This document shows positions 1-16,749 of a stretch of DNA of 64,000 nucleotides, one piece after another. The stretch's first letter is position 1. Every line of letters begins with the position of its first letter. The notes under the pieces are model-generated. The model was not told the origin of the DNA. It made no database searches and saw nothing but the letters and a program-made list of their open reading frames with translations. The stretch is taken from positions 148,353 through 212,352 of the IMG/VR virus record IMGVR_UViG_3300038441_001119; one strand, 5' to 3'. The position numbers and the translations under genes are program-made.

Positions 1-50
1 GTCTGGCATTGCGTTCTTTCTTTTGCTGATCCTTGTTATACTTGAACCAC

Positions 51-371
51 TTAGCGTCGTCTCGGTGACTTGCCATTGCGTTTCACTTTCATCTTGGGGC
101 GCAGCTTCGACTTCAGACGTATGGTCGAGGCGAGGAACTTGCGTGCCTCTCGATCAATGGTCCGTGATTTCCTTTCGTCGTACTGCAGGGTTGCCTCCTT
201 GATGACCAGTCCATCAATGGAGGTGATGGTCCAAGCATTGTAGAGGTATTTCAGTTCAGGGTCGTTGTCAGGTGTCTCGAAAACAAGAATGGCGCCAAGT
301 TCCGGCTTGTTACCATGCTCGTCCTTGATGTCACTAGTCAGTTCAATCTTTTTTGTCAGGGGTTCCGTCAT
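51..371 (-). CDS. hypothetical protein (106 aa, basic C-terminus)
   Basis: ORF in a run of overlapping minus-strand genes; no recognisable motif. Confidence 0.6.
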   Translation of the reverse strand: MTEPLTKKIELTSDIKDEHGNKPELGAILVFETPDNDPELKYLYNAWTITSIDGLVIKEATLQYDERKSRTIDREARKFLASTIRLKSKLRPKMKVKRNGKSPRRR

Positions 372-900
372 CTTTTACTTTCAGTAGGAGGATGTCAGTC
401 AAACCGGGATGGATAAACACATCGAACATTGCTGTTTCCTGTGGTTTCATCTGTACGATCCCGGTATTGACTACGTGTCGTACAGTATAGATTCTGTGTT
501 CGTTGCCAAGATAAACCCACGCAATGCTGTCACGTCTTTCTTTGAGGGTTACCTTAAGTCGCTTCGGCTTAATGTTGTTCGCACGGAAGATTTTATCAAT
601 CTTTTGCTCCATGGTTGCATTAGCCTCCACTCCCCGTGCACCTTGCCCAAGCACTTCACATGCACGGAAGTACATGCGGTCAATGCCTACGGTGTCCCAG
701 CGTTCAATGAACTCTACGAGGGCTTCAGCTTTCTTGTAAGCCGTCTCCCTTCCTTTGAGTTCATTGTGATAAATCATGTGAGAGTGCATCCGAGCAAGGA
801 TGTCTGTAGTTGTGACATCGAGGGTAGCTTCCGGGTCTACCGTAACACCCAACTGTTCAGCCATTCTCTTGACGAACTCTTCAAACTGATTCTCCGACAT
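343..900 (-). CDS. hypothetical protein (about 185 aa)
   Basis: Track ORF 343..1125; start moved to MSENQFEEF (ATG at 900) because the upstream part overlaps the 881..1159 gene and is low complexity. Confidence 0.6.
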   Translation of the reverse strand: MSENQFEEFVKRMAEQLGVTVDPEATLDVTTTDILARMHSHMIYHNELKGRETAYKKAEALVEFIERWDTVGIDRMYFRACEVLGQGARGVEANATMEQKIDKIFRANNIKPKRLKVTLKERRDSIAWVYLGNEHRIYTVRHVVNTGIVQMKPQETAMFDVFIHPGLTDILLLKVKDDGTPDKKD

Positions 901-1159
901 TTCCTTGTTCCTCTGAAGCTGGGTGAAGGCATTTGTACATTCCCTCCGCATCTTCTTTGGTAAGAACGTGTAGATAGAGATTTTCCCTTTCGTCGAGGCG
1001 AAGGGCAACGAAACAGGGGAACTGCCTCGGAACCTCGACTTGCTTTTGTCGGAAGAAGGGGAGTCCGCTACGGTGTTTGACCCACCTTGCAAACGCGGCG
1101 GCGTCTTGCTGGAAACAGAAATCATTTGAGTAGTGATTGTTTATTTTTGTCAGATCCAT
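881..1159 (-). CDS. small hypothetical protein, P-x2-[FY]PCFV motif
   Basis: 92 aa ORF; VPRQFPCFV matches YPESYPCFV of the adjacent gene. Confidence 0.6.
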   Translation of the reverse strand: MDLTKINNHYSNDFCFQQDAAAFARWVKHRSGLPFFRQKQVEVPRQFPCFVALRLDERENLYLHVLTKEDAEGMYKCLHPASEEQGNVGESV

Positions 1160-1427
1160 CGAACTTCATGGGAGAGTATGTGATCCCGATGACGGCCTCG
1201 TTCATCTTCTTCAGGTAGGGAATCTCTAGAAAGGTGAACCGGTAGTCCATCAGATCGTCGTCTATACTGTAATCAACAAAGCAGGGGTAGCTTTCCGGAT
1301 AATGCACAGGAGGGGCAGAGAAGCCAGTCTCTCGCAGATACGACTCATAGTGTTCCTTGTTTCGTATCAGGCGGAAGTCTGGGCGTCGTGCTGTCTGTAG
1401 TGGGAATTGATCGTCAAACTGGCTCAT
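1122..1427 (-). CDS. small hypothetical protein, P-x2-[FY]PCFV motif
   Basis: 101 aa ORF; YPESYPCFV motif shared with 881..1159. Confidence 0.6.
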   Translation of the reverse strand: MSQFDDQFPLQTARRPDFRLIRNKEHYESYLRETGFSAPPVHYPESYPCFVDYSIDDDLMDYRFTFLEIPYLKKMNEAVIGITYSPMKFDGSDKNKQSLLK

Positions 1428-1896
1428 CGGGGTGATTTTCTTTGAATAGTGTGTGGTATTTAGCGAACAGGTATCGTTGTCTCTTGGGTACTCTGAGTTT
1501 GACCCGCCATTTATACAGCTCTACCATGTAGGCCAGTTGTTTCGCAGGAATGTACCTATCGAGAATAGATAGGACACTCCTGCGCTCGTCCTCCGTAACA
1601 AAGGGAAGCATCGTAATAATCCACAAGGCGTAGTCCACCCTGTCGTACGCGAGGTTCGGATTTTCGTCGTACGGAAAGCACGACTTCATGTCCATACGCC
1701 TCTCGATGACTTCCATGGTTACGCCCATGGAGCCAAACATATGGGTGAATAACTGCACCCCTTTGGGACATGCACCGAAGTAGAGCAGTACGTCTGGAGA
1801 AATCTTTGTGCTACCCTGAGGTTTGAGAATTTCCTTCTCAAACAGACTCCACTTGATTCGCGTCAGTAGGCTTGGTTTCTTCATGGTTGTTGACAA
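1414..1896 (-). CDS. hypothetical protein with L-x3-GAC-x2-G-x3-F motif
   Basis: 160 aa ORF containing LLYFGACPKGVQLF. Confidence 0.6.
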   Translation of the reverse strand: MSTTMKKPSLLTRIKWSLFEKEILKPQGSTKISPDVLLYFGACPKGVQLFTHMFGSMGVTMEVIERRMDMKSCFPYDENPNLAYDRVDYALWIITMLPFVTEDERRSVLSILDRYIPAKQLAYMVELYKWRVKLRVPKRQRYLFAKYHTLFKENHPDEPV

Positions 1897-2098
1897 CAGT
1901 TACGGTGATGGATGGAGATTGAGCGGAGTATTTCATACGCTCTCCTTCTTTTTTGATCTCTGCTCTGAGGGCGTCGAGAAAAGTATCAACGCCCTTTGAA
2001 AAACCGTCACGGTAACCTGCATCGCGGTCATCCATAACGATTTGTGAGTCTGCGAATGTCTCCCAGACCTGCATAGCTATTTTGTCGAAGTTGATCAT
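1838..2098 (-). CDS. hypothetical protein (86 aa)
   Basis: ORF coupled by ATGA overlap to the 2095..2550 gene. Confidence 0.5.
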   Translation of the reverse strand: MINFDKIAMQVWETFADSQIVMDDRDAGYRDGFSKGVDTFLDALRAEIKKEGERMKYSAQSPSITVTVVNNHEETKPTDANQVESV

Positions 2099-2550
2099 TG
2101 TTCGGTGGCTTTGTCCCAGAGTTCGTAAACAAGGGCGAATTTAAGTGGGAGGATGTGGACGGTCTGTTTGTCTGAAGTGACGACCTCGAAACCTCCGCGT
2201 TTGAAGTCCGCCTTGTGGTGTGCATCGCCCTTGTGGCGGACGAGCTTCACTTTCTCACAGTCTTCTTCATTGATCCTGATGGGAGCGCGGTCCCCAATGA
2301 AGTTGAATGCGATGGTCTCCAGATCGATCATTTCAATTTCAGCAAGGGCGCCGTCAATGAAGACACCTTGGGTGCTGAAAAGTGCATTGCACATATCACG
2401 CCAGTTGGAGAAGGCGACGATGTCGTGATTCTTTGGAGAAGCAACGGCTTCGATATCCTTCTTGGGTTTCGCTGGAGGAGCCGGGACCTTCGGGGTTTGA
2501 TTCGACTTGTCAACGATGGTGATAGTGGGCTTGGTGGTAGTGGTGGACAT
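2095..2550 (-). CDS. hypothetical protein (151 aa)
   Basis: ORF with Pro/Lys-rich N-terminus; starts 15 nt after a terminator-like hairpin. Confidence 0.65.
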   Translation of the reverse strand: MSTTTTKPTITIVDKSNQTPKVPAPPAKPKKDIEAVASPKNHDIVAFSNWRDMCNALFSTQGVFIDGALAEIEMIDLETIAFNFIGDRAPIRINEEDCEKVKLVRHKGDAHHKADFKRGGFEVVTSDKQTVHILPLKFALVYELWDKATEQ

Positions 2551-2565
2551 TATGGGTGTATAAAT

Positions 2566-2594
2566 AAAAACCCCGGCTCTTTGCAGAGACGGGG
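2566..2594 (-). terminator. intrinsic terminator-like hairpin
   Basis: Minus strand CCCCGTCTCT-GCAA-AGAGCCGGGG followed by TTTTT. Confidence 0.7.
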
Positions 2595-2616
2595 TTGGGT
2601 GTCGAGAAATCTGACT

Positions 2617-3105
2617 TTATTTAGTTAGGAACGGATCGTCAGTCAGTACGTTCCTGTCGTCGCTATCCGGGGCGTGACCGATTCGTGGGATCGACTTGTC
2701 ATCAGAGTCAATGGACTTGGACAAGTGAGCTTGGAATGCGGTAAGGAGAGGACGAATAATGACCGTTTGCAGTAGCTGATCGAAACCTTCATGCGCATAC
2801 CCGATCATGCCGGGGTCCAGCGCATTGGGCATAGCGTTTTCACCGAAGATGCGAGCGATTTCACCTTCCTTGGAGACAAGCCGGATGTCACTGATTAGCA
2901 CAACGTCGGAGAGTTTCCTCTGCGCGAGTTTTGCTACGATGACATCCGTTGCGTCTCCGTAACCGGAAGCGGAAATGATTTTCTCAAACGTGGCTTGATT
3001 GGCTGCCAAAAGCAGTGCAGCTTTAGCCAAAAGCTCCGGTACATCCGCCTCAGTCGGTGTTTGGTTTGTACCTGTCTTTTCGTTCTTGTCTTTCGATACG
3101 CTCAT
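2617..3105 (-). CDS. hypothetical protein (up to 162 aa)
   Basis: ORF ending just before the terminator; start uncertain because it overlaps 3050..3268. Confidence 0.65.
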   Translation of the reverse strand: MSVSKDKNEKTGTNQTPTEADVPELLAKAALLLAANQATFEKIISASGYGDATDVIVAKLAQRKLSDVVLISDIRLVSKEGEIARIFGENAMPNALDPGMIGYAHEGFDQLLQTVIIRPLLTAFQAHLSKSIDSDDKSIPRIGHAPDSDDRNVLTDDPFLTK

Positions 3106-3268
3106 CTTCAGTTCGATCCTGCTCTATTTCCTCCTTGACTGCAAGATCTTTATCGGCTTTTATTTTATCTGTACACGCTTTAATAGCAGCCTCGTACGCA
3201 GAATTGCGTGGGCGACGGGTGTTCCAGTTGTTCCGATTGAGGAACAAAGCAGCAGTACGAGCAATCAT
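3050..3268 (-). CDS. putative charged helical small protein (72 aa)
   Basis: Highly charged C-terminal half; ATG directly abuts the terminase ATG (CATATG). Confidence 0.4.
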   Translation of the reverse strand: MIARTAALFLNRNNWNTRRPRNSAYEAAIKACTDKIKADKDLAVKEEIEQDRTEDERIERQERKDRYKPNTD

Positions 3269-5149
3269 ATGTATAAGTCTAACAAAGACCTTTATTCGCG
3301 AATTAGTAACGATACTAACTTCCGACTCAATATTAACAAACTATTTGGGAGATTTCAAATAGAAGCAGCGGAAGCAGCAAAAGGTCGTCCCGGCGCTGAG
3401 GAGAAGCGGGACAAGACGATGATGGAACTATTCCAGTATTGTGGTTGGAACGTTGGCATTTTCTTTCCCCTGTTCTTCCCCAAGATGATTGAAGGGGGTC
3501 CTCTGAATGTGATGCGTCGTCCGTTCGGATTCATGATGACCGAGCTGAACGTCTCTGGTTACACCTGTATCAGGGGTAGTCGTCAGATCGCAAAGTCCAC
3601 CAATCTTGTTGGCAGGCAGCTTGTTAAGGGATTCCTGTTTCCTCGGTTCAAGTCGATGTACATCTGTCCTCACAACAACCACAAGAAAACCTATCAGAAC
3701 AGGTTTGCTGAAATGGAGGCGGCATGTCCGTTCATGGACTTCGTGTACAAGAACCCTCGTCTCCGCACCAACCTTTCGTACAAGCAGTATCCTCTGGAAG
3801 GTGAAGTAAACATTGTGAACTGTCTGACCGACTCTTCGCAGGCGCGTTCGAAAACCACTGATGAGCTTCTGTACGACGAGTACCAGCTCTTTGACTGGAC
3901 TCTTGAAGGTGATATTCGTCCCTGCCAATCGGTCTCTAAGATTCCGATGACTGTGTATGCAGGAACCTCCACCACTGTCGACTCCCCTCTGGAGTTCCGG
4001 TACCAAGAGGGAAGCCAACATACGTGGAAGGTCAGAAGTCCGAACGGTAAGGATTGGATTGATTTCGGTGACGAGGAGTTGATGATCAAATGCATACGTC
4101 CTCGCGGTTTGGTGTGTCCTTACACTGAACGTCCCCTGAATGTCGCACAAGGCGAGTACACTCCTACTTACAAGGATAGACATGAATATGGTTACACCAG
4201 TATCCATGTTCCTCAGCTTATTATCAAAGACAAGGTGGAGCACCGTATCGACTGGGCTAAGATCTACGAAGCTTTTGAGGAGTTCGATAGACCGAAGTTC
4301 ATGGAAGAGTTCCTTGGTATCCCCTCGGAACTGGGTGCTCGGGAAATTACTGAGGCAGACCTTAAGGCGATCTGCACTCTTGGGAGCAAAGACGAGGTCT
4401 TTGAAAGGGTCAAACGCGGTGACTACAGTATTATTGTCTCTGGCTTTGACTGGGGTGGTTCTGACCACATTCCACACATCAAAGCTTCCCGCGTTAGTTT
4501 CACTGCCAATGCTGTTCTTGGTCTATCTGCTGATGGATACGTTGATATCCTTCATATGAGGCAGCACCATGGTATGAACTATGACTTCATTACCGGGCAG
4601 ATTGCTGAGGACTACAGGAAGTACCAGTGTAACGCACTAGCTTGTGACGCTGCTGGTGGTCAAGTCTACCTCAACAATCTTGATAAGCTTCTGAATCATA
4701 AGACTAACTTCCGGTTCGGTTACCACGCGCATGTCTTCCAACTGATGGGAGTTCCTTCGCATGGAGCGCCGAACCATTACACGTTGAACAAGCACGAGTC
4801 TATCGCCCAGCTGTTCCAAGCCATCAAGCACAAGAAGATTCGCTGCTACAAGTGGGAGGAGTCCGGGCCGCGTCTTAGCGAGATCCTGAATGTACAACGT
4901 GTTCTTATCGAACCGCAGTCGGGACCTCCGAAGTATCACTATCACATGACACCTCGGAATCCCGACGATACGGTTCATGCTTTGAACTACTCATATATTC
5001 TGATGCGCTTGCTTGCTGGTGAAAACGTTGTTCACGACGAACGCTTGATGCGTACTATTCAACAGGCTGTGCGGGGCGAGAATACTTTCTCCCCATTCCA
5101 GACATTCGGTGGTGTACCGAATCTGTTCGGGGAAATCGTTTCCGGTTAA
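3269..5149 (+). CDS. terL: terminase large subunit (about 626 aa)
   Basis: Walker A-like IRGSRQIAKST, Walker B LLYDEYQ, RNase H-type nuclease motif SGFDWGG and late DDTVHALNY. Start moved from 2999 to MYKSNK (3269) because the upstream extension is antisense to other genes. Confidence 0.88.
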   Translation: MYKSNKDLYSRISNDTNFRLNINKLFGRFQIEAAEAAKGRPGAEEKRDKTMMELFQYCGWNVGIFFPLFFPKMIEGGPLNVMRRPFGFMMTELNVSGYTCIRGSRQIAKSTNLVGRQLVKGFLFPRFKSMYICPHNNHKKTYQNRFAEMEAACPFMDFVYKNPRLRTNLSYKQYPLEGEVNIVNCLTDSSQARSKTTDELLYDEYQLFDWTLEGDIRPCQSVSKIPMTVYAGTSTTVDSPLEFRYQEGSQHTWKVRSPNGKDWIDFGDEELMIKCIRPRGLVCPYTERPLNVAQGEYTPTYKDRHEYGYTSIHVPQLIIKDKVEHRIDWAKIYEAFEEFDRPKFMEEFLGIPSELGAREITEADLKAICTLGSKDEVFERVKRGDYSIIVSGFDWGGSDHIPHIKASRVSFTANAVLGLSADGYVDILHMRQHHGMNYDFITGQIAEDYRKYQCNALACDAAGGQVYLNNLDKLLNHKTNFRFGYHAHVFQLMGVPSHGAPNHYTLNKHESIAQLFQAIKHKKIRCYKWEESGPRLSEILNVQRVLIEPQSGPPKYHYHMTPRNPDDTVHALNYSYILMRLLAGENVVHDERLMRTIQQAVRGENTFSPFQTFGGVPNLFGEIVSG

Positions 5150-5946
5150 ACCCAGACAAATTCCTCGGTCACCTCATCGCGGGTCTCAGCGAACTTGTGT
5201 TCGAGGTACTTGGGTGCGAGTTCGTTCCACTTAGCTTCGGCTAACAGTTTCACCTCCGTACTGTCGGGGTTATGTAGGGCGTACTTTGCCATATTGACCG
5301 CGTGTACGGTTACACCTTGCATCACACGGGGGAATATGTGCAAGTTTTTGGTGAATACGTCTACGTGCCTCGTGGTCTCGCTTCCATAGTTGAATAAGTT
5401 CAACGTACCGATCACCACCTTCTCCGGTGACACTTCATACATCGAATGGACATCGAGCTGAGAGTGCCCAAATAGAGCCGACCTTGTTTGTAGCGATTTA
5501 CCAATCAATACTTCTCCACTAACGAACTGCACTTCTGCTCCAGAAGAAACGTGACCCCTCACGTTGACGCTTTCTCTGAACTCTATCTTGGTACCAGAAG
5601 GACGAGCGTGGATACTATCGAGGGATTCCACGCTTGATCGGAACACAAGATCCCCGTCCGATTCGATACGACCATGCGCGTGAACACTTTCTAGGAAAAT
5701 TGTCGTTCCAGTTCTCCGACGAGTAAAGTCCATGTTCTTGAACATTACTACCGTACCAACTCCCACAGTCAATCCTTCATAAGTATGGCCTGCTGGTAGA
5801 TGTACGATACCAAGTCCGGATTCTAGGACAAGTCTCGACTCTCTTGAAAGAGTGAGCAGCGTTGACTGTAGAGCTGGAAGAAGGATCTTCTCTTTGGAGA
5901 ACCTATGCGCAGTCGTCAGGTCTTCTTTAGATATATGAAAGTCCAT
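5146..5946 (-). CDS. beta-solenoid (bactofilin-like) protein 1 with C-terminal VTEEFVWV
   Basis: 266 aa; beta-rich G-D/N-L/V repeats (ESDGDLVF, VRGHVSS); shared C-terminal octapeptide. Confidence 0.7.
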   Translation of the reverse strand: MDFHISKEDLTTAHRFSKEKILLPALQSTLLTLSRESRLVLESGLGIVHLPAGHTYEGLTVGVGTVVMFKNMDFTRRRTGTTIFLESVHAHGRIESDGDLVFRSSVESLDSIHARPSGTKIEFRESVNVRGHVSSGAEVQFVSGEVLIGKSLQTRSALFGHSQLDVHSMYEVSPEKVVIGTLNLFNYGSETTRHVDVFTKNLHIFPRVMQGVTVHAVNMAKYALHNPDSTEVKLLAEAKWNELAPKYLEHKFAETRDEVTEEFVWV

Positions 5947-6746
5947 TATATGAATACGTACTCTTCTTCGAGGACAGAGGTTGGCAGCTGAGGTCCATTG
6001 ATGATGACTTTGGACTCCAGCTGTTTGGCGTAGGTCGGATGTCCCTTGAACAGGAACTCGTCACACCTGACAGGGTACTGCACATCGTTGGAATCGACGT
6101 TGTGGTGCCACAGTCCTTCCACGGTAACTGTGGGTAACGTTTTTTGTGCTGGGATGTCGGCGGGCCAGAGCTGGATCATACCTGTAGTCTCCAGTTTGGG
6201 GCATTTGACATTGCACTGTGCCATATGTATCTTGACAACCTTCACGGGACTATCGAAGACGATATTGGCGAACTTCTCAGAATCGTTCTCAGCCATCGTG
6301 ACAGGAACGACAATGATATAGTCGGCCTCGGCAGGACCCTTGATGTGAATGAACATGTCACTCAATGCTACACCAGATGGACGTAACGACAGATTCAGTA
6401 CAAGATCAGCTCCGGATGACCCTTTGTAGCTACCAGCAACAACAAGTTTATGCTTAACGATAATCTGCCGATTGTGCTCAAGGTTACCTCCTAAGTTTCC
6501 TGTAGTTAAAGTAAATTGGCAGGAATTAATCCTGATATTCGTTCCGCTACCTACTTCGAGATGCCCTACGACACAGGTGGAACTAATATCGTATGCACCG
6601 AGGTCAGGAGCGATGGCAACATTGGGTAGACGGGATGGTTGTCCTTGCCTGCCTTGCTCTCGTCCCCATGCTGTAATAGCTGCGCTAAGGTTCGTAGTAC
6701 GGGAGGTGATATTGATGTCGATTGTTGGTATTTCAGGTGGTTTCAT
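5946..6746 (-). CDS. beta-solenoid protein 2 with C-terminal LEEEYVFI
   Basis: 266 aa; VVGHLEV, LGGNLE, VAGSY repeats; TAATG coupling to the next gene. Confidence 0.7.
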   Translation of the reverse strand: MKPPEIPTIDINITSRTTNLSAAITAWGREQGRQGQPSRLPNVAIAPDLGAYDISSTCVVGHLEVGSGTNIRINSCQFTLTTGNLGGNLEHNRQIIVKHKLVVAGSYKGSSGADLVLNLSLRPSGVALSDMFIHIKGPAEADYIIVVPVTMAENDSEKFANIVFDSPVKVVKIHMAQCNVKCPKLETTGMIQLWPADIPAQKTLPTVTVEGLWHHNVDSNDVQYPVRCDEFLFKGHPTYAKQLESKVIINGPQLPTSVLEEEYVFI

Positions 6747-6749
6747 AAT

Positions 6750-7508
6750 TTAGATCCACACGAATTCTTCTGTGATGGGTTCTGTAATGATGGCGACCTT
6801 TTTGAAGGCTATATTGGTGAACTTAAGTGACCCATGGTTAACCTTAGGTCCAAGTTCCTCCGTGCGCACCGCTACTGACAGGGTGGAATTGGTTGGCGGT
6901 ACGTTGAACTCCGTACAATCTACAACAATATGCTCGGTTGAGCGTCTACTGTTGGTAGCCGCAATACTCAACGCTGTAAGGGTACCATCTACACTCAGAT
7001 GAGAGTACATACCGCGAGCCACTACCATGTGGCTGAGGGTGACATCTCCTTCTACAGTCAGGCTACCTGTTATTAGCAGCTTGTTGGTACCTGATACTTC
7101 TTTGCTGATAGGACCGCATATGGTACCTGACGACTTGGTCATACAATACAAAGTACCGAAAGCGTGGTTGGCGAACGAGGCATTACCTGCTGGTCGACTT
7201 ATCCCATTTTCAAACAGGAACTTTCCGTACAAGTCCATGGAGTACTGGTACCCCATTTTCCCCTGTACATGCACAGTACCATGTATGGAAATTCCAGATT
7301 CGAAATACAGTTCCGTACCTGCGCCGATCCGAAGGTGACGTACCACTGCCCAGAAAGCGATATAGACCACACCTAGTCCTCCGGGAACATCCCAGTCAAT
7401 CGTGCGTCCCCGGTTGTTCATCGTGGACATACTGACCACTCTGTGAGTCATGCGAGGACGAAGCTCACAGTGATCCCACCCGTTTTGTGTTATGGTTGGA
7501 AATTTCAT
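6750..7508 (-). CDS. beta-solenoid protein 3 with C-terminal ITEEFVWI
   Basis: Start moved to MKFPTIT (7508, ATGA overlap with the upstream stop), giving 252 aa; ITGSLTVEGDVTL and VDGTLTA repeats. Confidence 0.7.
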   Translation of the reverse strand: MKFPTITQNGWDHCELRPRMTHRVVSMSTMNNRGRTIDWDVPGGLGVVYIAFWAVVRHLRIGAGTELYFESGISIHGTVHVQGKMGYQYSMDLYGKFLFENGISRPAGNASFANHAFGTLYCMTKSSGTICGPISKEVSGTNKLLITGSLTVEGDVTLSHMVVARGMYSHLSVDGTLTALSIAATNSRRSTEHIVVDCTEFNVPPTNSTLSVAVRTEELGPKVNHGSLKFTNIAFKKVAIITEPITEEFVWI

Positions 7509-8269
7509 ACAAATACGTACTCCTCTTCTATTGGACTGGTGACTGGTGCATATCCTTGCTTTGGTACATGCATAGGTTTTTCGCGAACATGGACGCTCTT
7601 GAAGTGTTCCTTGGTAGTACCATCTCCGAGACGGTCGCATATTACGTGGGTAGGCAAGGGACCACCGGCTCTGTCAGAGGACCATCCTGCCTCAAACGTA
7701 CCGGCGTCAATATATGGAGGTGTGTTTCCGACAGGGAAGTCATAATGTTGTACCCAGTCGGCTAAGCTAAATGTACCACTGACAGTTACCTCCGAGCTTC
7801 CAGCAGAACCATCAGTATATTTTCCAGTGCAGGTGAGGTCTCCTTTGACGATAAGCTGGGTTTGCTGCCCGTCCATTCTGATGGAGGTTGTTTCGCAGTT
7901 TCCGTCTACTGTAACAACGTCTTTTACAATGATGCGAACACCATACGACGATTTGACGATAAGATCGCCTTTGACATGGCACGTTTCGTAGAACCCTAGG
8001 TCACCCTTAAGGACAGTGAGGTCGCCTCCGAAAACCGAATCGCGGTAACAGAACGTAATCCCGTCCTGCATGGTTAGGTTAGTTCCATCGCCTACAATCG
8101 CGGTTCCGATAACAAGCGATCCATCATGGTAAATATCTCCCAAGTCTGGATCAATATGCAAGTCCATGTCACCTTTGCTGATGACTCTGTTGCTGTGTAC
8201 CGGGAATGGCCAGACGATCTGACCGTCATGTGAAATGTTGTCTTTTGTGATTACTATTTTTTCTCTCAT
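7505..8269 (-). CDS. beta-solenoid protein 4 with C-terminal IEEEYVFV
   Basis: 254 aa; repeats FGGDLTV, VKGDLIV, VDGNCET, VKGDLTC, VSGTFSL typical of bactofilin-like beta-helices. Confidence 0.75.
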   Translation of the reverse strand: MREKIVITKDNISHDGQIVWPFPVHSNRVISKGDMDLHIDPDLGDIYHDGSLVIGTAIVGDGTNLTMQDGITFCYRDSVFGGDLTVLKGDLGFYETCHVKGDLIVKSSYGVRIIVKDVVTVDGNCETTSIRMDGQQTQLIVKGDLTCTGKYTDGSAGSSEVTVSGTFSLADWVQHYDFPVGNTPPYIDAGTFEAGWSSDRAGGPLPTHVICDRLGDGTTKEHFKSVHVREKPMHVPKQGYAPVTSPIEEEYVFV

Positions 8270-8281
8270 TTTGGTTACACG

Positions 8282-8314
8282 AAAAAGCCCCGGAAGATTG
8301 CTCCTCCGGGGCTT
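8282..8314 (-). terminator. intrinsic terminator-like hairpin
   Basis: AAGCCCCGGA...TCCGGGGCTT inverted repeat, GCAA loop on the minus strand, followed by TTTTT. Confidence 0.75.
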
Positions 8315-8347
8315 CGGTTTAGTTGAGTTTAGGAATTGTCTTCCATC

Positions 8348-8500
8348 TTATTGGCAGGATTCGCATGTACCATCAAGGTTGCATGCTGGTACGCCTAGTT
8401 CTGGCCAATCTTCATCTTCAACTTGGGACGGACCTTTCTGACCGATAAGTTCGTCTTCCTGTTCCTTACTCAACCGTTGCGTTTCGTTCTCCTTGCTCAT
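8348..8500 (-). CDS. 50-aa acidic micro-protein ending ACNLDGTCESCQ (RNR alpha C-tail-like)
   Basis: Hand-translated: MSKENETQRLSKEQEDELIGQKGPSQVEDEDWPELGVPACNLDGTCESCQ; fills the gap between the AAA gene and the terminator; below the ORF-track length cut-off. Confidence 0.65.
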   Translation of the reverse strand: MSKENETQRLSKEQEDELIGQKGPSQVEDEDWPELGVPACNLDGTCESCQ

Positions 8501-9851
8501 CTTCTTTTACAGAATCTTTAAGGTGGTGCTGCCAGTACCACTTGAAAGCCGCCTGAATACATTCGTTCTCCCAATTGGCGGCAGGCTGATCCTTCGAACT
8601 TTCGACCATAGCATCAATCTCGGCTTGAGGCAAACCATTCATGATACGATTGGCGAGGGAGGTGCGTCCTTCCTTGCTCAAATAGGGAACTTCCACCTTA
8701 CGATCCACGCGTCCCGGTCTGAGCAGCGCCGGGTCCAGTTTCTCGATGTGATTGGTTGTCATGATGACCATACCCAACAGTGGGTCGACACCTGACAGCA
8801 TGTTCAGCAGCGTTTCGAACGACAGCTTGGGACCATCGTGTTTCACTTGGTTTTCACGTCCAACAAAGATGGCATCAATGTCTTCCAGAAGGATGATCTT
8901 CGGTTCCCCCGCAGTCACCTTCTTATATAGTTTCTCCACGTCCGCATCACAGAAGGTAGCCAAGTGAACCTTCAGGATCGGAATACCGTACTCTTCGGCG
9001 AGCACGCGTACAAGGGCGCTCTTACCGGTACCGGGGGCACCATAGAGCATCAAACCACGTTTGCAGGGGATACCTCGTTCACGCATCCATGTCTTTGCTT
9101 TGATGAAGGTTTCAAATTCATCACGAAGGACCTGCATGCTTGGGTCCAGATAGTACCGGGAGAATGGCTTGATCTTCTTGGAAGTACCGAACTCATCAAC
9201 CACACGGTTATACATTGGGTATACGTCCACAGCCCGTTTACCGGCTCCACGAACAATTCTGAGAACCGAGTCCATGGAACCTGCTCCGGGAGAGTCGTGG
9301 GCCATTTTAGCTCCGCCTCCACCATGGGGAGCTGGGTCGGCATTACCGAACATACTGTCCACCGCATTCTTGTTGTTGGTAGTGATGGAGCCGTAGACGT
9401 TCTCCACGTAGAAGTTATCAGACCTTAGGGAGGCCAGACTCTCATTCTCGTGCCCATACCAGCTTTGTCCTGCCTTTTCGATCAGCTTTTTGCCATTCAC
9501 CCAGCCACGTATGTAAGTGAGCGTACCTTGACTCTCACTTTCCACAGTCCAGATTACCAGCTTGCCTTTCAACCAGAAGATAGCAGGCTTTGTATCCACT
9601 TCGATCATGACCGGGGCTAGGTCATTGATCTCTCGGTGTCGTTCAAAGACGCCTACAAATTGAGTGGGACCAAACTTGATATGCTTCCACTCTTTCCATA
9701 GTTGGCAGTGTAAGTGAGAAGCAGGTCTCCCTGTGATCTTCACCCTTACCACCAGAATTGTACTAAGGCGCAACAAGAAGGACTTGATCTGCCCATACAG
9801 CATGATGATAGGAGCCAGCCATGCCAGTCCTGCGATATTGCTTAAATTCAT
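8466..9851 (-). CDS. BCS1-like AAA+ ATPase with N-terminal hydrophobic anchor
   Basis: Walker A GLMLYGAPGTGKS, Walker B ILLEDID, SRH MTTNHIEKLDPALLRPGRVD; hydrophobic N-terminus LAWLAPIIMLY. Confidence 0.85.
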   Translation of the reverse strand: MNLSNIAGLAWLAPIIMLYGQIKSFLLRLSTILVVRVKITGRPASHLHCQLWKEWKHIKFGPTQFVGVFERHREINDLAPVMIEVDTKPAIFWLKGKLVIWTVESESQGTLTYIRGWVNGKKLIEKAGQSWYGHENESLASLRSDNFYVENVYGSITTNNKNAVDSMFGNADPAPHGGGGAKMAHDSPGAGSMDSVLRIVRGAGKRAVDVYPMYNRVVDEFGTSKKIKPFSRYYLDPSMQVLRDEFETFIKAKTWMRERGIPCKRGLMLYGAPGTGKSALVRVLAEEYGIPILKVHLATFCDADVEKLYKKVTAGEPKIILLEDIDAIFVGRENQVKHDGPKLSFETLLNMLSGVDPLLGMVIMTTNHIEKLDPALLRPGRVDRKVEVPYLSKEGRTSLANRIMNGLPQAEIDAMVESSKDQPAANWENECIQAAFKWYWQHHLKDSVKEDEQGERNATVE

Positions 9852-10666
9852 ACGATAAGGTTAAGGGTCTTTGCGAAAAACTTGATGTCGACATCTGGGT
9901 CGATTCCTTCAAGCCCAGTTTCAAGGGACCATGGTTTGCCATAGTGCGTTAGGAACAGATCGGTCTTCAACTTCTTATTGCGCCAATGTTTGGTCAGCTC
10001 AGAGAAGTGACAGTGGTTACCTCCCACCACTTTACCGTGATTCTTGGCATCATGTATGACGATGTCAGATTGCTCACACAGGTCATGAGGCTCCATACAG
10101 TCGGACGTGAAAAGAACACGGTTACCGTTGTCACTGACGAACCAGAGACCATAGTTGGACTTGAACTGGTCATCGTACATGCTGCCCGCTTGCTGCTTGA
10201 AGAGAGGCATGTGCCGTGAGAACTGATACTGGAACCGAATACCTTGCCAGACGAATGACTTGTAGTTGGGCATAGCATCGCGATCAAAGTAATCGTCAAC
10301 AGTGATACCCCTTCCATCGTAGAACGCTTCCAGACCATGCATCAGTGCGGTGTCCAGTTCGTCCATAACGTCAGGGTGTCCGAACAACTTGGGACGTATC
10401 CTCTTTCCGTTCTCGTCAGTCTTGGGGATGTAGTACCTCGAATGGGCCAGCATCTCCAGACCTCCCATATGGTCACCGTGAATGTGGGAGATATAGACGG
10501 CATCAATATCCGTGAAGGGAATCTTGAACTCGTCCCTAAGGATGTAGGGAGTCGTGGTACCGCAGTCGAAAAGTAGTTTCTTGTTGTTGTGTTCAATAAG
10601 GAAGGAAGAGTTGCCTTCGTCCATAGTCGCGAAGGCTCCACCGTTTCCGAGGGAAGTGATTTTCAT
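9848..10666 (-). CDS. metallo-beta-lactamase-fold hydrolase, Apyc1/RNase Z-like
   Basis: LGNGGAF, LFDCG, HIHGDHMGGLE (HxHxDH), FTSD, IHD, THYG; start set at MKITSLG (10666). Confidence 0.8.
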   Translation of the reverse strand: MKITSLGNGGAFATMDEGNSSFLIEHNNKKLLFDCGTTTPYILRDEFKIPFTDIDAVYISHIHGDHMGGLEMLAHSRYYIPKTDENGKRIRPKLFGHPDVMDELDTALMHGLEAFYDGRGITVDDYFDRDAMPNYKSFVWQGIRFQYQFSRHMPLFKQQAGSMYDDQFKSNYGLWFVSDNGNRVLFTSDCMEPHDLCEQSDIVIHDAKNHGKVVGGNHCHFSELTKHWRNKKLKTDLFLTHYGKPWSLETGLEGIDPDVDIKFFAKTLNLIV

Positions 10667-10709
10667 GTATTGGGTGCTAGTGGTAGGTAAAAAGAGGGAA
10701 CGACGAAAT

Positions 10710-10748
10710 CCTAGCCCACTCGCCTCGTGAAAGGACAGGTGGGCTAGG
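10710..10748. other. intergenic stem-loop
   Basis: Perfect 10-bp inverted repeat CCTAGCCCAC / GTGGGCTAGG with a 19-nt loop. Confidence 0.5.
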
Positions 10749-10752
10749 ACGG

Positions 10753-11268
10753 TCATTTAAAGCTCGGATGGCACGCTATCACACGTACATTCCGAGACTT
10801 AAGGCATTCCGCCAAAGTTTCTATGAAGCTGACCATATGATCAAAGTCCGGTGGTGGGCCTAGAGGGTTAGCTAAGCCCTCTTTCCCTGCGCCTACACCC
10901 GGAATGGGTAAGGCAACCGTGTATTCGTTTTTAGCCAGCTCCCAAGGTGGTAGATGTTTCTGCACCAGCCGTGTCGCGTCGATAATGGCGGTTTCACACC
11001 ATTCAGCACACGTCTGCACTGAGTACAGATCCTTAACTATGAGGTCGCCTATTGCGAGGTTATCGAGGGTAAATACAGCAGGATAAATATAGGCGTTCCC
11101 CGCTTCCGGGTACTCTTTCGCTTCTATCTTCCTACGGTATAACTGGAAGTACAACGGGAACCGCTGCTTGAACTCCAGCGCCAATCCTTTACCCATAGCA
11201 CCAGCCCTGTTGGTGGTATTGAATATCAGATTGGCTCCACAATTGAAGAGGTCAGGAGCTTTTTCCAT
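10753..11268 (-). CDS. macrodomain protein, DarG-like ADP-ribosylhydrolase
   Basis: IFNTTNRAGAMGKGLALEFKQRFP and ALPIPGVGAG macrodomain motifs. Confidence 0.8.
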   Translation of the reverse strand: MEKAPDLFNCGANLIFNTTNRAGAMGKGLALEFKQRFPLYFQLYRRKIEAKEYPEAGNAYIYPAVFTLDNLAIGDLIVKDLYSVQTCAEWCETAIIDATRLVQKHLPPWELAKNEYTVALPIPGVGAGKEGLANPLGPPPDFDHMVSFIETLAECLKSRNVRVIACHPSFK

Positions 11269-11455
11269 CGAAGAATTCTCGTAGTTGTTTGACTACTTTA
11301 AATGCTGCAAATGGTTTGGCGAACCAGAAGGTGAAGGTGTAAGACATCAAGACACAGAACACGAAGTACCTCTGTCTCGCTGCTTCTTCTTTCACTTTTT
11401 CCAGTTCTCCTTTCAGCTGAGTAATCTCGGCTTCAAGTTCCAGCACCGACCTCAA
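11252..11455 (-). CDS. small coiled-coil plus hydrophobic-segment protein (67 aa)
   Basis: N-terminal heptads, then YFVFCVLMSYTFTFWFA; overlaps both neighbours as in an operon. Confidence 0.55.
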   Translation of the reverse strand: MRSVLELEAEITQLKGELEKVKEEAARQRYFVFCVLMSYTFTFWFAKPFAAFKVVKQLREFFDGKSS

Positions 11456-12740
11456 GGGTGTACCCTCCCGTCTTTTTGCTGAGGTCCCAGTTGCGTTCGA
11501 CGAACTTGATGAGTTTGTCAGGGGCGGTAGTGCGCTTGAAGACTATGTTTGGACCATGTTGCTCCAGCATCACCGCTTTGATGTCATCTTCGAAGGTTTC
11601 AAGACCATCACTCGTGTTTTGCCCACACTGGTGGGAACCGCATTCCACGTTGCGCTGTGACCTGACGGGGATCTTGTCCGGAGCGTCTGGTCTCATTGGT
11701 GAGTGGAAGTGCAGGATACAGTCGTAACCGGGATGATCCCTGAATACCATACGCTGACTTTGACCCCCTACGGACGGTTTGGCGCCGTAGGCAAGTACTG
11801 TATCAGGTCCGTCCGTCCTGACATAAACCATCCCGATCTCAGGCAGTTTATTGAAGTCAGACTTTCGGATTGAAGTGACGAATTCCGTATCGGACATCTT
11901 GAACGCGAAATGTCCTACGGTTGCTCCATTGAACGGCTTGTAGGCGTTACCGGCGATACAGTGCTCGACGGCTGCTTTCAGTGGAGCTGGGATACGTTCA
12001 TCCCAAGGGACCAAGTCGCTTGCGATCACTGTCGACTGGGTGAAGGTCAACTGTGATCTGTAGAACGACATGTCCACCAAGTTGGCAAGTACCTCGTCAC
12101 GGTTAGCCGTTTCGTGATACGCCGCTTCCTCTGGTGTTACAATCATGTTCCAATGCCTTGCAGCATCATTGACCAGCACAAGGTTGCAGGATGCTTCCTT
12201 GCACAGTCTCAGGCCAGCCTCGAACATCTCCTGATTGCTCTTGCCCACAGTGGTCTTGAATCCTACAAGGAAGATGTCTTTACGACCATTCCTGATAGAT
12301 TGAATGACTTTGTTGGCAGGAGCGAAACTGAGGTGAATGTGTGGGTTTTCCCGAGTTTCCAGACGACGGGTGTACTTGCCGAACTCCTTGATCATTTCCT
12401 TCTCCCCAGCGAGTTGCAAGGTGTCTGGAATCCAATCAAGAAGTGCACAAGAGAAGAACACGATCTTTGAATCGGCTCTGCTCTTGATCATGTCTACCCT
12501 TGCCTGAATGTCATTATTGGTTGCCAAGGTTTTGTAACCGCCATCGACCTGATACGTGAGGTGCGGTGCAAGTCCCATGTTTGGGAACTTTGCTTTGCAC
12601 AACTTGTACAATGCTTTGGCGGTAGTACCCTTGGCCTCCGCTTCGACTTTGAAGTGGTGCGCTACATCGAAACGTGTTCCTCCTCCAAAGATGTGGATGT
12701 ATTTTCGGTCAGTTTTTGAAGAGTCCTGTTTTTGGCTCAT
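11433..12740 (-). CDS. CoaB/DFP-like domain fused to class II aldolase/adducin-like domain
   Basis: N-half GGGT, KIVFFSCALLDW, FLVGFKTT, NLVLVND (PPC synthetase-like); C-half VGHFAFK, KPSVG, ILHFHSP (HxH Zn motif); start likely MSQKQD at 12740. Confidence 0.65.
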   Translation of the reverse strand: MSQKQDSSKTDRKYIHIFGGGTRFDVAHHFKVEAEAKGTTAKALYKLCKAKFPNMGLAPHLTYQVDGGYKTLATNNDIQARVDMIKSRADSKIVFFSCALLDWIPDTLQLAGEKEMIKEFGKYTRRLETRENPHIHLSFAPANKVIQSIRNGRKDIFLVGFKTTVGKSNQEMFEAGLRLCKEASCNLVLVNDAARHWNMIVTPEEAAYHETANRDEVLANLVDMSFYRSQLTFTQSTVIASDLVPWDERIPAPLKAAVEHCIAGNAYKPFNGATVGHFAFKMSDTEFVTSIRKSDFNKLPEIGMVYVRTDGPDTVLAYGAKPSVGGQSQRMVFRDHPGYDCILHFHSPMRPDAPDKIPVRSQRNVECGSHQCGQNTSDGLETFEDDIKAVMLEQHGPNIVFKRTTAPDKLIKFVERNWDLSKKTGGYTLEVGAGT

Positions 12741-13056
12741 TTCTTTCTGCGCTGAATGGTTGGAAGTATTTGCCTGTGTCGTACTCCCGGGCACGAGTGT
12801 TGAAGCCTCCCGTTGTAGTGATGACTTCCCAGTAGGTGACTGGAAACAACCTTCGACACATCTCCTGCCGAATCCGCGTCACTTCCTCCGTTGAGAGAAG
12901 TTTTTGCTTCTCTCCAAACACAATATCCATTTCCCGCTGCAGCAGCTGTTGGTCAGCTTCCGTAATGGGTACGTTTCTCCGTTCGTACGTGGTGTACGTT
13001 TTCGAACACGCAGACAGTGCTGCTGCGAGTACGAGCATGAATAGACATCTTTTCAT
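12709..13056 (-). CDS. predicted lipoprotein (115 aa)
   Basis: Signal peptide MKRCLFMLVLAAALSA-C with lipobox LSAC. Confidence 0.7.
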   Translation of the reverse strand: MKRCLFMLVLAAALSACSKTYTTYERRNVPITEADQQLLQREMDIVFGEKQKLLSTEEVTRIRQEMCRRLFPVTYWEVITTTGGFNTRAREYDTGKYFQPFSAERNEPKTGLFKN

Positions 13057-13241
13057 CGGTTGGTTGCGAGGGGTTGGTATTGTATTAACGAGGGGGCGGG
13101 GCCTGCAAATGTCGCTTTGACTTTCACAGGCTGTACCGGACTACACGATACGGACAGCCACATCAATACGGTGATCAATATGGCAAGTCCTAACGTGTTA
13201 ATCAGGCATACGGATTCGGGGTCTGGGTCTTTAAACATCAT
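13053..13241 (-). CDS. possible small lipoprotein/membrane protein (62 aa)
   Basis: Hydrophobic stretch LGLAILITVLMWL followed by SVSC. Confidence 0.5.
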   Translation of the reverse strand: MMFKDPDPESVCLINTLGLAILITVLMWLSVSCSPVQPVKVKATFAGPAPSLIQYQPLATNR

Positions 13242-14010
13242 TTCCTACATTGGCATATTCACTATGCCCTGTAGCTGCTTTACGACGCATTTCGTTGAAG
13301 TCGACAATAGCCCGTGCGGCGATAACAGCTTCAGGGATGAATCTGACAATCTTACGATCAGTCGAATTGCTGTCCATGAGGACGTAATCCGCTTTATTCG
13401 TAAGGGTCAGACGGCTAGCTTCGGGGAGGTTCTCCCAGTTGAAGATGATGCGTTGGGTTACGATTTCGAGTGCTCGCTCGTAACGACGATCATACTCGTC
13501 ATGGAAGTGCAGAAGATATGTCAGCAGGTGATAAAAATAAACAGCCTCCTTACCGCCGCAAGCGGTCAGGAATCCAATTGTGGAGAAATCGAGATCACAG
13601 GCACCTTCCCGGATAGTTTCGAGCTTTTCCTGGTCGGGGTATGTGCTCTCGTCGTAACAGATGACAGCTTCAAATACTGCCAGTTCTTCTGCGATTCGCT
13701 CTTCCTCAGACTCTGGCTCATCACGTAATTCCAGCGGTTCACCATCCAGAATCACAGAAGAGCCACCTGTTGCCACAGCGCCATGGACACTTGGAATCCA
13801 ATCATCAGCGCGGACACGTCCAGCTGGAGACTTGGGTTCTTCATGCGATACCGTGATGACAGGTTTTGTTTTGTTAACAAGAGAAACCACCGGCAGCGGA
13901 GCCACCGGTGGTTTACCTGAAACTTGTTCCTGTGACAGCTTTGCAGCTGCAACAGAAGAGGGAGAGGGAGAAGGAATAAATAACGCTTTTTTAGGTAATT
14001 GTTCGGACAT
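13231..14010 (-). CDS. hypothetical protein with Pro/Ser-rich N-terminus (259 aa)
   Basis: Long ORF in the operon; acidic helical C-terminal domain. Confidence 0.65.
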   Translation of the reverse strand: MSEQLPKKALFIPSPSPSSVAAAKLSQEQVSGKPPVAPLPVVSLVNKTKPVITVSHEEPKSPAGRVRADDWIPSVHGAVATGGSSVILDGEPLELRDEPESEEERIAEELAVFEAVICYDESTYPDQEKLETIREGACDLDFSTIGFLTACGGKEAVYFYHLLTYLLHFHDEYDRRYERALEIVTQRIIFNWENLPEASRLTLTNKADYVLMDSNSTDRKIVRFIPEAVIAARAIVDFNEMRRKAATGHSEYANVGNDV

Positions 14011-14932: not shown

Positions 14933-15010
14933 GTTATGGCTGGTTGTACACGGATGGTTAGACACCGTGTTGGTTTATGTCAGAACCTCACTAAAAAATG
15001 AAGACTGACT

Positions 15011-16738: not shown

Positions 16739-16749
16739 GACTTTCGCTT

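Follow-up and report, generated by a model that had tools for sequence, protein, structure and literature searches.

What does it mean when four neighbouring genes of one phage encode proteins with highly diverged bodies but nearly the same last eight residues? The locus lies in an uncultured 212-kb phage (IMGVR_UViG_3300038441_001119, 212,352 bp) and was examined within a window of 64,000 nucleotides, the whole stretch of DNA analysed, corresponding to positions 148,353 to 212,352 of that record. The original prediction, made from the letters alone, described four coupled, highly diverged beta-solenoid genes sharing one C-terminal octapeptide in two alternating flavours, and proposed a system of variable bodies and a constant tag that docks on one hub, such as a host PDZ protease, a phage ATPase or a polymer. 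The observation itself holds. The interpretation is partly supported: the same tail also ends at least seven other proteins elsewhere in the genome, so it looks like an address or docking label used across the phage, whose receptor has not been identified.

All four genes are on the minus strand and are translationally coupled. G1 (7505-8269) is the first gene of the four and encodes a 254-aa protein ending in IEEEYVFV. G2 (6750-7508) encodes a 252-aa paralogue ending in ITEEFVWI; its ATG overlaps the G1 stop as ATGA, and independent gene callers in other assemblies give the same 252-aa product. G3 (5946-6746), starting 3 nt after the G2 stop, encodes a 266-aa paralogue ending in LEEEYVFI. G4 (5146-5946), joined to G3 by a TAATG overlap, encodes a 266-aa paralogue ending in VTEEFVWV and is the last gene of the cluster, convergent with the large terminase gene. 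The tag is encoded by ATA GAA GAG GAG TAC GTA TTT GTA in G1 (7508-7531, minus strand), ATC ACA GAA GAA TTC GTG TGG ATC in G2 (6753-6776, minus strand), CTC GAA GAA GAG TAC GTA TTC ATA in G3 (5949-5972, minus strand) and GTG ACC GAG GAA TTT GTC TGG GTT in G4 (5149-5172, minus strand), confirming that the synonymous differences are real. No gene follows G4, so translational coupling cannot explain the conservation there.

Upstream of G1, a strong hairpin followed by a U-run (8282-8314, minus strand) resembles a terminator and ends 14 nt upstream of the G1 start codon, with an RNA fold of -27 kcal/mol and a z of -5.7 against shuffles. Immediately upstream of the cluster lies a gene (8466-9851, minus strand) for a 461-aa classical-clade AAA+ ATPase, identified by Pfam AAA at 1.9e-25, whose best solved relatives are VAT, Cdc48, AFG2 and BCS1; PADLOC gives IetA and TRIP13 through the AAA domain. 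Its 240-residue N-terminal domain is an orphan for which no relatives were found. A 50-aa acidic ORF ending in C-x6-C-x2-C-Q (8348-8500, minus strand), called as a gene in other assemblies but without an assigned function, overlaps the 3' end of the AAA+ gene.

Sharing of the tail by these four genes exceeds chance. Of 1077 stop-to-stop frames of at least 30 aa in the window, only these four end in the motif, and among 195 ORFs of at least 80 aa only pairs within the four share similar C-terminal octapeptides. Similarity between the bodies, in contrast, is barely detectable, with BLASTP E-values running from 2e-4 to 13. With the tails removed, the six pairs among G1-G4 still rank just below the top of all pairs among tagged proteins (z 7.2 to 1.7); they are therefore old paralogues, of which G1 and G3 form the closest pair (z 7.2).

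The predicted beta-solenoid fold is supported for the central 120-170 residues, whereas the C-terminal 60-100 residues fall outside the modelled part. The ESM Atlas model of G1 has a pTM of 0.77 and structural neighbours of the bactofilin/FapA type, and AlphaFold2 (AF2) predicts short strands over residues 1-170 of the same protein. In the AF2 model of G4, residues 38-160 are all short strands at pLDDT 70-79, with the tail at about 25. Pfam hits to Bactofilin, MinC_C and pAdhesive_15 are below threshold: against bactofilin (PF04519), G1 scores 12.8 bits and G2 13.8 bits relative to a gathering cut-off of 27.9, with no hit for G3 and G4, and against the MinC C-terminal domain (PF03775) G4 scores 15.2 bits relative to a cut-off of 33.2. 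Foldseek matches are not significant. The short N-terminal x-I-[TS] strand that had been noted in all four proteins carries little information; G1 has a predicted strand at residues 3-7, while the model does not cover the N-terminus of G4.

To determine whether the tail is specific to these genes, we retrieved 91% of the parent contig and searched its six-frame translation (193,933 bp) for the motif [ILVF][TDE]E[ED][YFWM][VIT][FW][VI]; the remaining 9% or so (contig 1-18,419) was checked only with the strict DNA pattern with TAA and TGA stops. The motif occurs 11 times, each time directly before a stop codon and never internally, whereas about 1.2e-4 such C-terminal cases are expected by chance. 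The next-best C-terminal score among 2419 frames is 20, against 40 or more for the eleven. Besides G1-G4, the carriers comprise seven proteins of 135-643 aa in three other places: R1-R5 at L131:8511-11243, T1 at L133:1298-3229 and S1 at L138:1379-2014. The bodies of these seven show no detectable similarity to the solenoids; with tails removed, only R3-R4 and the G family show similarity, and every other pair is at noise. The tag is consequently not a property of four beta-solenoid genes. The ABAB alternation is correct for these four, but the other carriers mix the two flavours (TEEYVFV), so there are not two discrete classes but samples from one broader consensus.

The suggestion that selection acts on the peptide was strengthened. 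Mean pairwise identity is 0.68, 0.79 and 0.39 at codon positions 1, 2 and 3, respectively, and 47% of codon pairs encoding the same amino acid use different codons. Proline is enriched just upstream of the tag (9% against 5% in the proteome), and no carrier has a transmembrane segment or signal peptide. The tails have pLDDT values of 25-33 in both AF2 models, although the low overall confidence of these models (mean pLDDT about 49) means that flexibility of the tail is only suggested.

All carriers are orphans, even against 1.84 billion representative proteins, and no homologues in related phages were found in any database searched. No other virus, genome or metagenome that we scanned has real genes with this tail, and no bacterial protein family with it turned up in a partial scan of 185,579 genomes. 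The nearest cultured relative, Salmonella phage Arash, a control genome of similar size, shows no recurrent C-terminal tails and lacks both the tag and AAA+ genes of this kind. Because the phage is a singleton and all database copies are 100% identical, conservation can be judged only among paralogues and unrelated carriers within one genome.

Taken together, the octapeptide is best read as the core of an 11-residue tag at the extreme C-terminus, roughly T-[ES]-[PV]-[IV]-[TDE]-E-E-[YFWM]-[VI]-[FW]-[VI]-COOH, which this one phage attaches to at least 11 otherwise unrelated, fast-evolving, soluble proteins. The analysis itself demonstrates that the tag occurs only at protein ends, that it is conserved at the peptide level and not at the DNA level, and that it sits on bodies with no detectable similarity to each other beyond the pairs named above. 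Everything concerning its use, including binding, is our inference, held with moderate confidence: the exposed tail would insert its four hydrophobic residues and its free carboxylate into a pocket of one common receptor, with the two Glu residues contacting a basic rim, and a dozen different proteins would thereby be brought to the same partner or place. In this view, the four solenoid genes, coupled for roughly equal output, are the largest family of carriers.

We consider the putative receptor to be phage-encoded, because the tag is confined to this phage lineage. The adjacent Cdc48/VAT/BCS1-like AAA+ ATPase, acting as an unfoldase, remodeller or translocase that takes tagged clients or adaptors, is a possible receptor, but a candidate by position only: the G cluster alone is next to the AAA+ gene, whereas the R and T carriers lie directly upstream of SF2 helicase genes and S1 has no informative neighbour. 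The procapsid interior, by analogy with T4 capsid-targeting sequences and encapsulin cargo peptides, ranks slightly lower, followed by a host or phage protease reading a C-degron, which is doubtful, and by the solenoid proteins themselves as an inferred polymer scaffold accepting the tail as an added strand, which is unlikely; the remaining weight falls on a replisome or host hub. A bolder possibility, which we hold only tentatively, is that the phage has evolved its own protein-sorting code, in which one C-terminal peptide, read through the free carboxylate, addresses a dozen unrelated phage proteins to a single phage-built destination, which could be a Cdc48/BCS1-like AAA+ machine that unfolds or translocates them, or the procapsid interior in the manner of encapsulin cargo peptides. 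This would be a terminal-signal trafficking system of a kind not described for phages; import into the nucleus of nucleus-forming phages, for example, is reported not to use terminal signals (PMC12908238).

Among alternative explanations, a capsid-targeting or cargo-loading tag survives best, although it remains doubtful. The tail would dock the carriers onto the scaffold or the inner surface of the procapsid, so that they are packaged and later ejected into the host, and the [ILVF]-x-E present at positions -8 to -6 of all 11 tails, just before the hydrophobic end, could be a T4-type protease site that releases the cargo. A short terminal tag on unrelated proteins in hypervariable tandem arrays of 15-72 kDa mirrors the T4 internal-protein loci, many genes scattered through non-structural regions of Arash are annotated as virion structural proteins, and neighbouring genes include anti-defence genes, as expected for ejected effectors. 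However, the head module carries a different recurrent motif, K-[KS]-A-S, in the putative protease, the scaffold-like proteins and the major capsid protein N-terminus at residue 30, which looks like the real maturation site and is absent from all tagged proteins. No gp21-like protease was detected, known giant-phage propeptides are almost all N-terminal (PMC10052503), and the carriers are encoded among replication and early-looking genes.

Somewhat less likely is a C-terminal degron marking the carriers for timed destruction by a host protease or a phage AAA+ unfoldase, or a tether by which carriers acting as adaptors bring their targets to such a machine. Hydrophobic free C-termini are classic degrons and tethering peptides, such as the ssrA LAA end, the SspB tail that binds ClpX, and ligands of the Tsp and HtrA PDZ domains; a classical-clade AAA+ lies next to G1, and the bodies evolve fast, as expected for binders of host targets. 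Nevertheless, the tail does not match the SspB sequence, and pattern searches at the C-termini found no terminal LAA, no SSB-Ct end (D-D-D-I-P-F; no PF) and no clamp-binding motif (QL[SD]LF or a PIP box). No protease partner of the AAA+ was recognised, and PDZ proteases are periplasmic, whereas the carriers have no export signal.

An export signal is unlikely. An acidic residue followed by several hydrophobic residues, which must lie at the free C-terminus, is the extreme C-terminal motif documented for the type I secretion substrates AprA, PrtG and TliA (PMC2642768), which also contain a beta-roll solenoid, and all 11 tails have this form, ending in E-[ED]-[YFWM]-[VIT]-[FW]-[VI]. The tag could send carriers out of the cytoplasm through a host ABC system or through the AAA+ protein, which has BCS1 among its best solved relatives and a moderately hydrophobic N-terminal segment, and G1-G4 are predicted beta-solenoids. 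Against this, no glycine-rich RTX nonapeptide repeats (GGxGxD) occur in any of the 12 proteins examined, no ABC exporter or membrane-fusion gene appears among the Pfam hits on record for contig 28-166 kb, the N-terminal hydrophobicity of the AAA+ (1.49) is below the usual transmembrane threshold, and several carriers lie in the replication module.

A nucleic-acid signal, whether a translational-coupling or ribosome-binding cassette (GAGGA plus spacer plus ATGA), an RNA-processing site or a recombination hot spot, is very unlikely. The Glu codons do spell GAGGA-like strings 11-12 nt before the next start codon in several cases, and four junctions are ATGA or TAATG overlaps; yet third codon positions vary freely, substitutions are conservative at the protein level (Y/F/W, V/I), R1, R5 and T1 are 15-16 nt from the next gene, G2 uses GAAGAA, and gene leaders in this genome are CA-rich without Shine-Dalgarno sequences, making it unlikely that the Glu codons double as ribosome-binding sites. 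Equally unlikely is an intramolecular capping strand without an external partner, because, although solenoid ends need caps and the tail has strand-like, beta-branched and aromatic residues, the same tail ends seven proteins with no detectable similarity to the solenoids and, in G1 and G4, the tail is itself unmodelled and separated from the solenoid core by 60-100 unmodelled residues.

The tag and its carriers can be compared in turn with several known systems. The T4 capsid-targeting sequence on internal proteins IPI-III and Alt is likewise a terminal tag of about 10 residues, shared by otherwise unrelated, hypervariable phage proteins of very different size, often in tandem, and containing a hydrophobic-x-Glu element, but it is N-terminal and removed by the gp21 protease, whereas the tag described here is strictly C-terminal. 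Encapsulin cargo-loading peptides are short C-terminal peptides that dock diverse cargo on one hub, an HK97-fold shell; their consensus differs, as no GSL core was found near any C-terminus of the carriers, and no evidence places these carriers in the capsid. The extreme C-terminal motif of type I secretion substrates shares the acidic residue followed by 3-5 hydrophobic residues, the free C-terminus and a preceding beta-roll solenoid, although most carriers here are not solenoids. Class II PDZ and HtrA-type ligands, and SspB and ssrA-type tails for AAA+ proteases, serve many proteins with one motif read through the free carboxylate, as is inferred here; the hydrophobic-x-hydrophobic-COOH form is present here, with V or I at position 0 in all 11 tails and, at position -2, V or I in 10 and T in one, but the conserved part (11 residues) is longer than a typical PDZ ligand, and no PDZ family appears among the Pfam hits on record for the fetched genome, in which most proteins match nothing at all. 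For bactofilin, the MinC C-terminal domain and FapA right-handed beta-helices, the resemblance lies in the compact predicted solenoid cores of G1-G4, which are of similar size, with only weak profile and structure-neighbour signals pointing to this fold class and without evidence of polymerisation, which in bactofilins is nucleotide-independent and yields filaments. Finally, the short linear motifs of Cdc48/p97 cofactors (SHP, VIM) and the ESCRT-III MIM tails that bind Vps4 belong to eukaryotic or archaeal systems and have unrelated sequences, yet in them many different bodies use one short motif to dock on the N-domain of a classical-clade AAA+ ATPase, the kind of ATPase encoded next to G1 and here only a putative partner.

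The region 5146-8269 of the window comprises four minus-strand genes joined head to tail: G1 (7505-8269, 254 aa), G2 (6750-7508, 252 aa), whose ATG overlaps the G1 stop as ATGA, G3 (5946-6746, 266 aa), which starts 3 nt after the G2 stop, and G4 (5146-5946, 266 aa), joined to G3 by a TAATG overlap. The encoded proteins end in IEEEYVFV (G1), ITEEFVWI (G2), LEEEYVFI (G3) and VTEEFVWV (G4). Among 1077 stop-to-stop frames of at least 30 aa in the window, only these four terminate in such a motif, and among 195 ORFs of at least 80 aa, only pairs within the four share similar C-terminal octapeptides. The original prediction that these four genes share a C-terminal octapeptide is therefore correct, and the similarity is far beyond chance.

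The bodies of the four proteins are old paralogues. BLASTP E-values between them range from 2e-4 to 13, and after removal of the last 11 residues the six pairs still rank directly after the best pair among all tagged proteins, with z scores from 7.2 for G1-G3 down to 1.7 for G3-G4. Additionally, all four share an N-proximal motif, LG..(7-10)..VG.GT. The beta-solenoid description holds for the core. The ESM Atlas contains a G1 model with a pTM of 0.77 whose structural neighbours are bactofilin/FapA-type solenoids, including viral clusters, and AF2 prediction from the four-sequence alignment yielded short, regularly spaced strands over G1 residues 1-170, as well as G4 residues 38-160 at pLDDT 70-79. 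The AF2 models are of low overall confidence, with a mean pLDDT of about 49, and the C-terminal 60-100 residues and the tails are unmodelled, at pLDDT 25-33. Pfam returned sub-threshold hits to Bactofilin, MinC_C and an ice-binding-like adhesin domain, Foldseek searches against PDB and BFVD returned only non-significant beta-helix look-alikes, and no regular repeat period was found in the hydrophobicity autocorrelation.

The window represents the last 64 kb of IMGVR_UViG_3300038441_001119, a contig of 212,352 bp, such that contig coordinates equal window coordinates plus 148,352. The same phage occurs in several assemblies and is always 100% identical; the source samples are JGI 3300038441 and SRR8439261 and SRR8439262. 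It is very divergent, encodes roughly 260 proteins, and almost nothing in it matches PHROGs. BLASTN of the region against GenBank phages found nothing, and terminase-based retrieval from IMG/VR found only the phage itself. The nearest GenBank phages are Salmonella phage Arash and Vibrio phages D69, D148 and D181. Identity to Arash is 32% for RNA polymerase beta, 27% for the major capsid protein and 21% for the terminase, and the Vibrio phages are at a similar level for the two proteins compared with them, RNA polymerase beta and terminase. The phage is thus a deep-branching singleton of that group. It encodes split genes for a multisubunit RNA polymerase with Rpb2_6 and Rpb1_2 domains (L136:11971-15756 and L138:16390-17610, where L-numbers here and below denote separately retrieved sequences), a UDG-PolA fusion, a UvsX-like protein, a DnaB-like protein, a ligase and ThyX. 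Start codons are preceded by CA-rich leaders of the acacac and caacca types and not by Shine-Dalgarno sequences, and many intergenic regions carry a strong hairpin and T-run shortly before the next start, pointing to a host or expression mode that does not use Shine-Dalgarno initiation. No tmRNA, tRNA or Rfam element is present in the window, and the identification of a 556-aa DUF8224 protein as chimallin is not supported by any PDB match.

G1-G4 lie between a convergent large terminase gene (2999-5149, plus strand) and a block of minus-strand genes. The terminase gene is a lone plus-strand gene inside a long minus-strand region and converges on G4; its long ORF starts with about 90 implausible residues that overlap a minus-strand gene, and other gene callers start it at 3269 (626 aa). 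The minus-strand block contains a classical-clade AAA+ ATPase (8466-9851) and, just upstream of it, an anti-defence-looking pair (9848-11268) consisting of a metallo-beta-lactamase-fold protein with an Apyc1 (anti-Pycsar) Pfam hit (9848-10756) and a 171-aa macrodomain protein resembling the antitoxin DarG (10753-11268). A strong terminator-like hairpin (-27 kcal/mol, z -5.7) ends 14 nt before the G1 start. Elsewhere, the phage carries a ubiquitin-like conjugation operon (L135:10596-15590) encoding a 316-aa protein with a weak Prok-E2_D match, a 71-aa protein, a ThiF-type E1 (239 aa), a 368-aa protein and a 554-aa protein with a JAMM motif (HxHx7SxxD); the E1 has a homologue in phage Arash, gp246c, which is annotated there as a structural protein. 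Furthermore, three nearby genes at about 11.5-15.5 kb of L142 (contig about 23.5-26.8 kb) encode proteins that start with twin-arginine-type signals (MKRRDFIRG.., MKRRHFFKG.. and MKRRSFLSG..), suggesting phage proteins exported through the host Tat pathway.

We scanned IMG/VR with degenerate DNA patterns for the tail plus a stop codon, which, besides G1-G4, identified two further hits elsewhere in the same contig. Retrieval of that region, followed by walking along the contig, gave continuous sequence from 18,420 to 212,352, corresponding to 91% of the genome; the first 18.4 kb were checked only with the strict DNA patterns. In the six-frame translation of these 193,933 bp, the motif [ILVF][TDE]E[ED][YFWM][VIT][FW][VI] occurs 11 times, every time immediately followed by a stop codon and always on the minus strand, whereas about 1.2e-4 C-terminal occurrences are expected from the amino-acid composition of the proteome. 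The next-best C-terminal score among 2419 frames is 20, against 40 or more for the eleven.

The seven additional carriers comprise R1 (L131:8511-9422, 303 aa, ..EPIDEEMTFI), R2 (L131:9438-10004, 188 aa, ..EPITEEYVFV), R3 (L131:10001-10408, 135 aa, ..EPVTEEYVFV), R4 (L131:10405-10824, 139 aa, ..EPITEEYIFV), R5 (L131:10827-11243, 138 aa, ..SVIDEDWVFV), T1 (L133:1298-3229, 643 aa, ..SEFEEEMVFI) and S1 (L138:1379-2014, 211 aa, ..EPVTEEYIFI). S2 (L138:2014-2784, ..EEDVTDWEFV), which is coupled to S1, may be a degenerate twelfth carrier. R1-R5 sit in the replication module and end 16 nt before a DEAD-box helicase gene, while T1 ends 16 nt before another SF2 helicase gene. With tails removed, only R3-R4 (z 17.7) and the G family show similarity, all other pairs being at noise. 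None of the carriers has a transmembrane segment or signal peptide. R2 contains a run of about 35 residues made almost entirely of Asp, Glu and Tyr (..EEYEDDDYDDELDVYDEDEEEEEYDSVY..), reminiscent of DNA-mimic or polymerase-binding acidic tails.

Across the 11 tails, mean pairwise identity is 0.68 and 0.79 at codon positions 1 and 2 but 0.39 at position 3, and of the codon pairs that encode the same amino acid, 47% use different codons. The substitutions that do occur are conservative (Y/F/W/M, V/I/T and F/W). G4 retains the tag with no gene downstream, and several carriers are 15-16 nt from the next gene. Because this genome does not use Shine-Dalgarno leaders, the GAGGA-like Glu codons are unlikely to be kept as ribosome-binding sites. 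Selection therefore acts on the peptide, and specifically on a peptide at the very end of the chain, although the phage exists as a single genotype and conservation is judged within one genome only.

All carriers are orphans. A word-index search with G1 and an exhaustive profile search of 1.84 billion representatives with the four-gene alignment returned only the four genes and one unrelated 1378-aa repeat protein, and profile searches with R3-R5 and with the N-domain of the AAA+ ATPase returned only themselves. Apart from the sub-threshold Pfam hits, Pfam, PHROGs, NCBIfam and PADLOC gave nothing for any carrier, the PDB sequence search with T1 found nothing, and the ESM Atlas models of R3 and R1 are poor, with a pTM of 0.19. 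In four IMG/VR scans covering both Glu codons at one fixed Glu position with TAA and TGA stops, but not TAG, every hit outside this phage was an 8-69-residue junk frame. In one scan each of 185,579 bacterial and archaeal genomes and of JGI metagenomes, no long-ORF hit outside this phage matches the strict motif, and the four looser long-ORF matches are unrelated proteins: two RING-like proteins, one resembling an NrdG-type activase, and one other. No widespread bacterial family with this C-terminus appeared, which argues against mimicry of a common host protein, although only one sixth of the codon and stop combinations was covered in genomes and metagenomes. A 309-kb contig with a related AAA domain has no recurrent tails within 10 kb on either side. 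Phage Arash, analysed whole, has no such tail, no recurrent C-terminal tails of any kind, and no homologues of the carriers or of the AAA+ proteins. The tag is therefore an innovation of this lineage.

What the sequences themselves establish is that a strictly C-terminal tag of 8-11 residues, conserved at the peptide level, sits on at least 11 soluble proteins with unrelated bodies. That the tail is an exposed peptide, that one common receptor binds it through its hydrophobic end and free carboxylate, and that the proteins are thereby recruited to one partner or place are inferences, which we regard collectively as more likely than not. The proposal in the original prediction that variable bodies dock on a single hub through a constant tag is thus partly supported, since selection on the peptide is borne out, but the tag is used across the phage, and the hub can be discussed only in terms of candidates.

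The first candidate receptor is the adjacent AAA+ ATPase, whose AAA domain is closest to VAT, Cdc48, AFG2 and BCS1 and which possesses an orphan 240-residue N-domain; two further AAA proteins are encoded elsewhere (L135:17056-18375 and L140:21760-23163). Classical AAA+ machines typically take clients and cofactors through short linear motifs. The second candidate is the procapsid, by analogy with T4 capsid-targeting sequences and encapsulin cargo peptides, and all tails carry hydrophobic-x-Glu, as in T4 protease sites. Against this, the head module (window 44428-51751, minus strand) shows its own recurrent motif, K-[KS]-A-S, more broadly K-[KSTMV]-A(1-2)-S, with 29 sites in the called proteome against about 6 expected. 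These sites are concentrated in a 483-aa putative prohead protease (47692-49143, 4 sites), a 522-aa protein (50183-51751, 4 sites), an acidic scaffold-like 368-aa protein (46527-47633, 3 sites), a 157-aa protein (2 sites) and the major capsid protein at residue 30, the major capsid protein and scaffold-like proteins lying at window 44428-47633; the motif also occurs in an RNA-polymerase-beta-like 619-aa protein, and the loci concerned include L136:11971-13830 and L131:17374-18822. It looks like the cleavage motif of the maturation protease and may mark virion proteins, and the carriers lack it. Giant-phage propeptides are also N-terminal as a rule (PMC10052503). Other candidates are a protease that would read the tail as a C-degron, and the solenoids themselves, which would act as a polymer accepting the tail as an added strand. 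An export route is also conceivable, given that type I secretion substrates have the same form of extreme C-terminal motif and a beta-roll (PMC2642768), but the carriers have no RTX repeats and no transporter genes were seen among the Pfam hits for contig 28-166 kb. An intramolecular solenoid cap is unlikely, because the tail occurs on proteins that show no similarity to the solenoids. DNA mimicry is unlikely because the pI values are 5.0-8.3.

Short terminal tags that send many different proteins to one receptor underlie secretion, degradation, organelle targeting and cargo loading. The occurrence of such a tag on at least 11 orphan proteins of one very divergent phage that encodes its own multisubunit RNA polymerase provides a direct experimental handle, as a single peptide could fish out the receptor and reveal what a large share of the phage's "dark matter" genes have in common. 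If transferable, the tag could also serve as a tool to deliver proteins to that receptor. The case further shows that scanning genomes for recurrent protein termini can link orphan genes that homology searches cannot connect.

The breadth of use of the tag within one phage genome has, to our knowledge, no described counterpart, and for nucleus-forming phages, import is reported not to use terminal signals (PMC12908238). Its logic, however, is that of known terminal sorting or docking motifs, namely the T4 capsid-targeting sequence, encapsulin cargo peptides, type I secretion ends, PDZ ligands, and the SHP, VIM or MIM motifs used by AAA+ cofactors, although it may prove to be something more once the receptor is known. 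The sequence of the tag matches none of these motifs, and its position differs from the only well-known phage precedent, the capsid-targeting sequence of T4, in being C-terminal rather than N-terminal.
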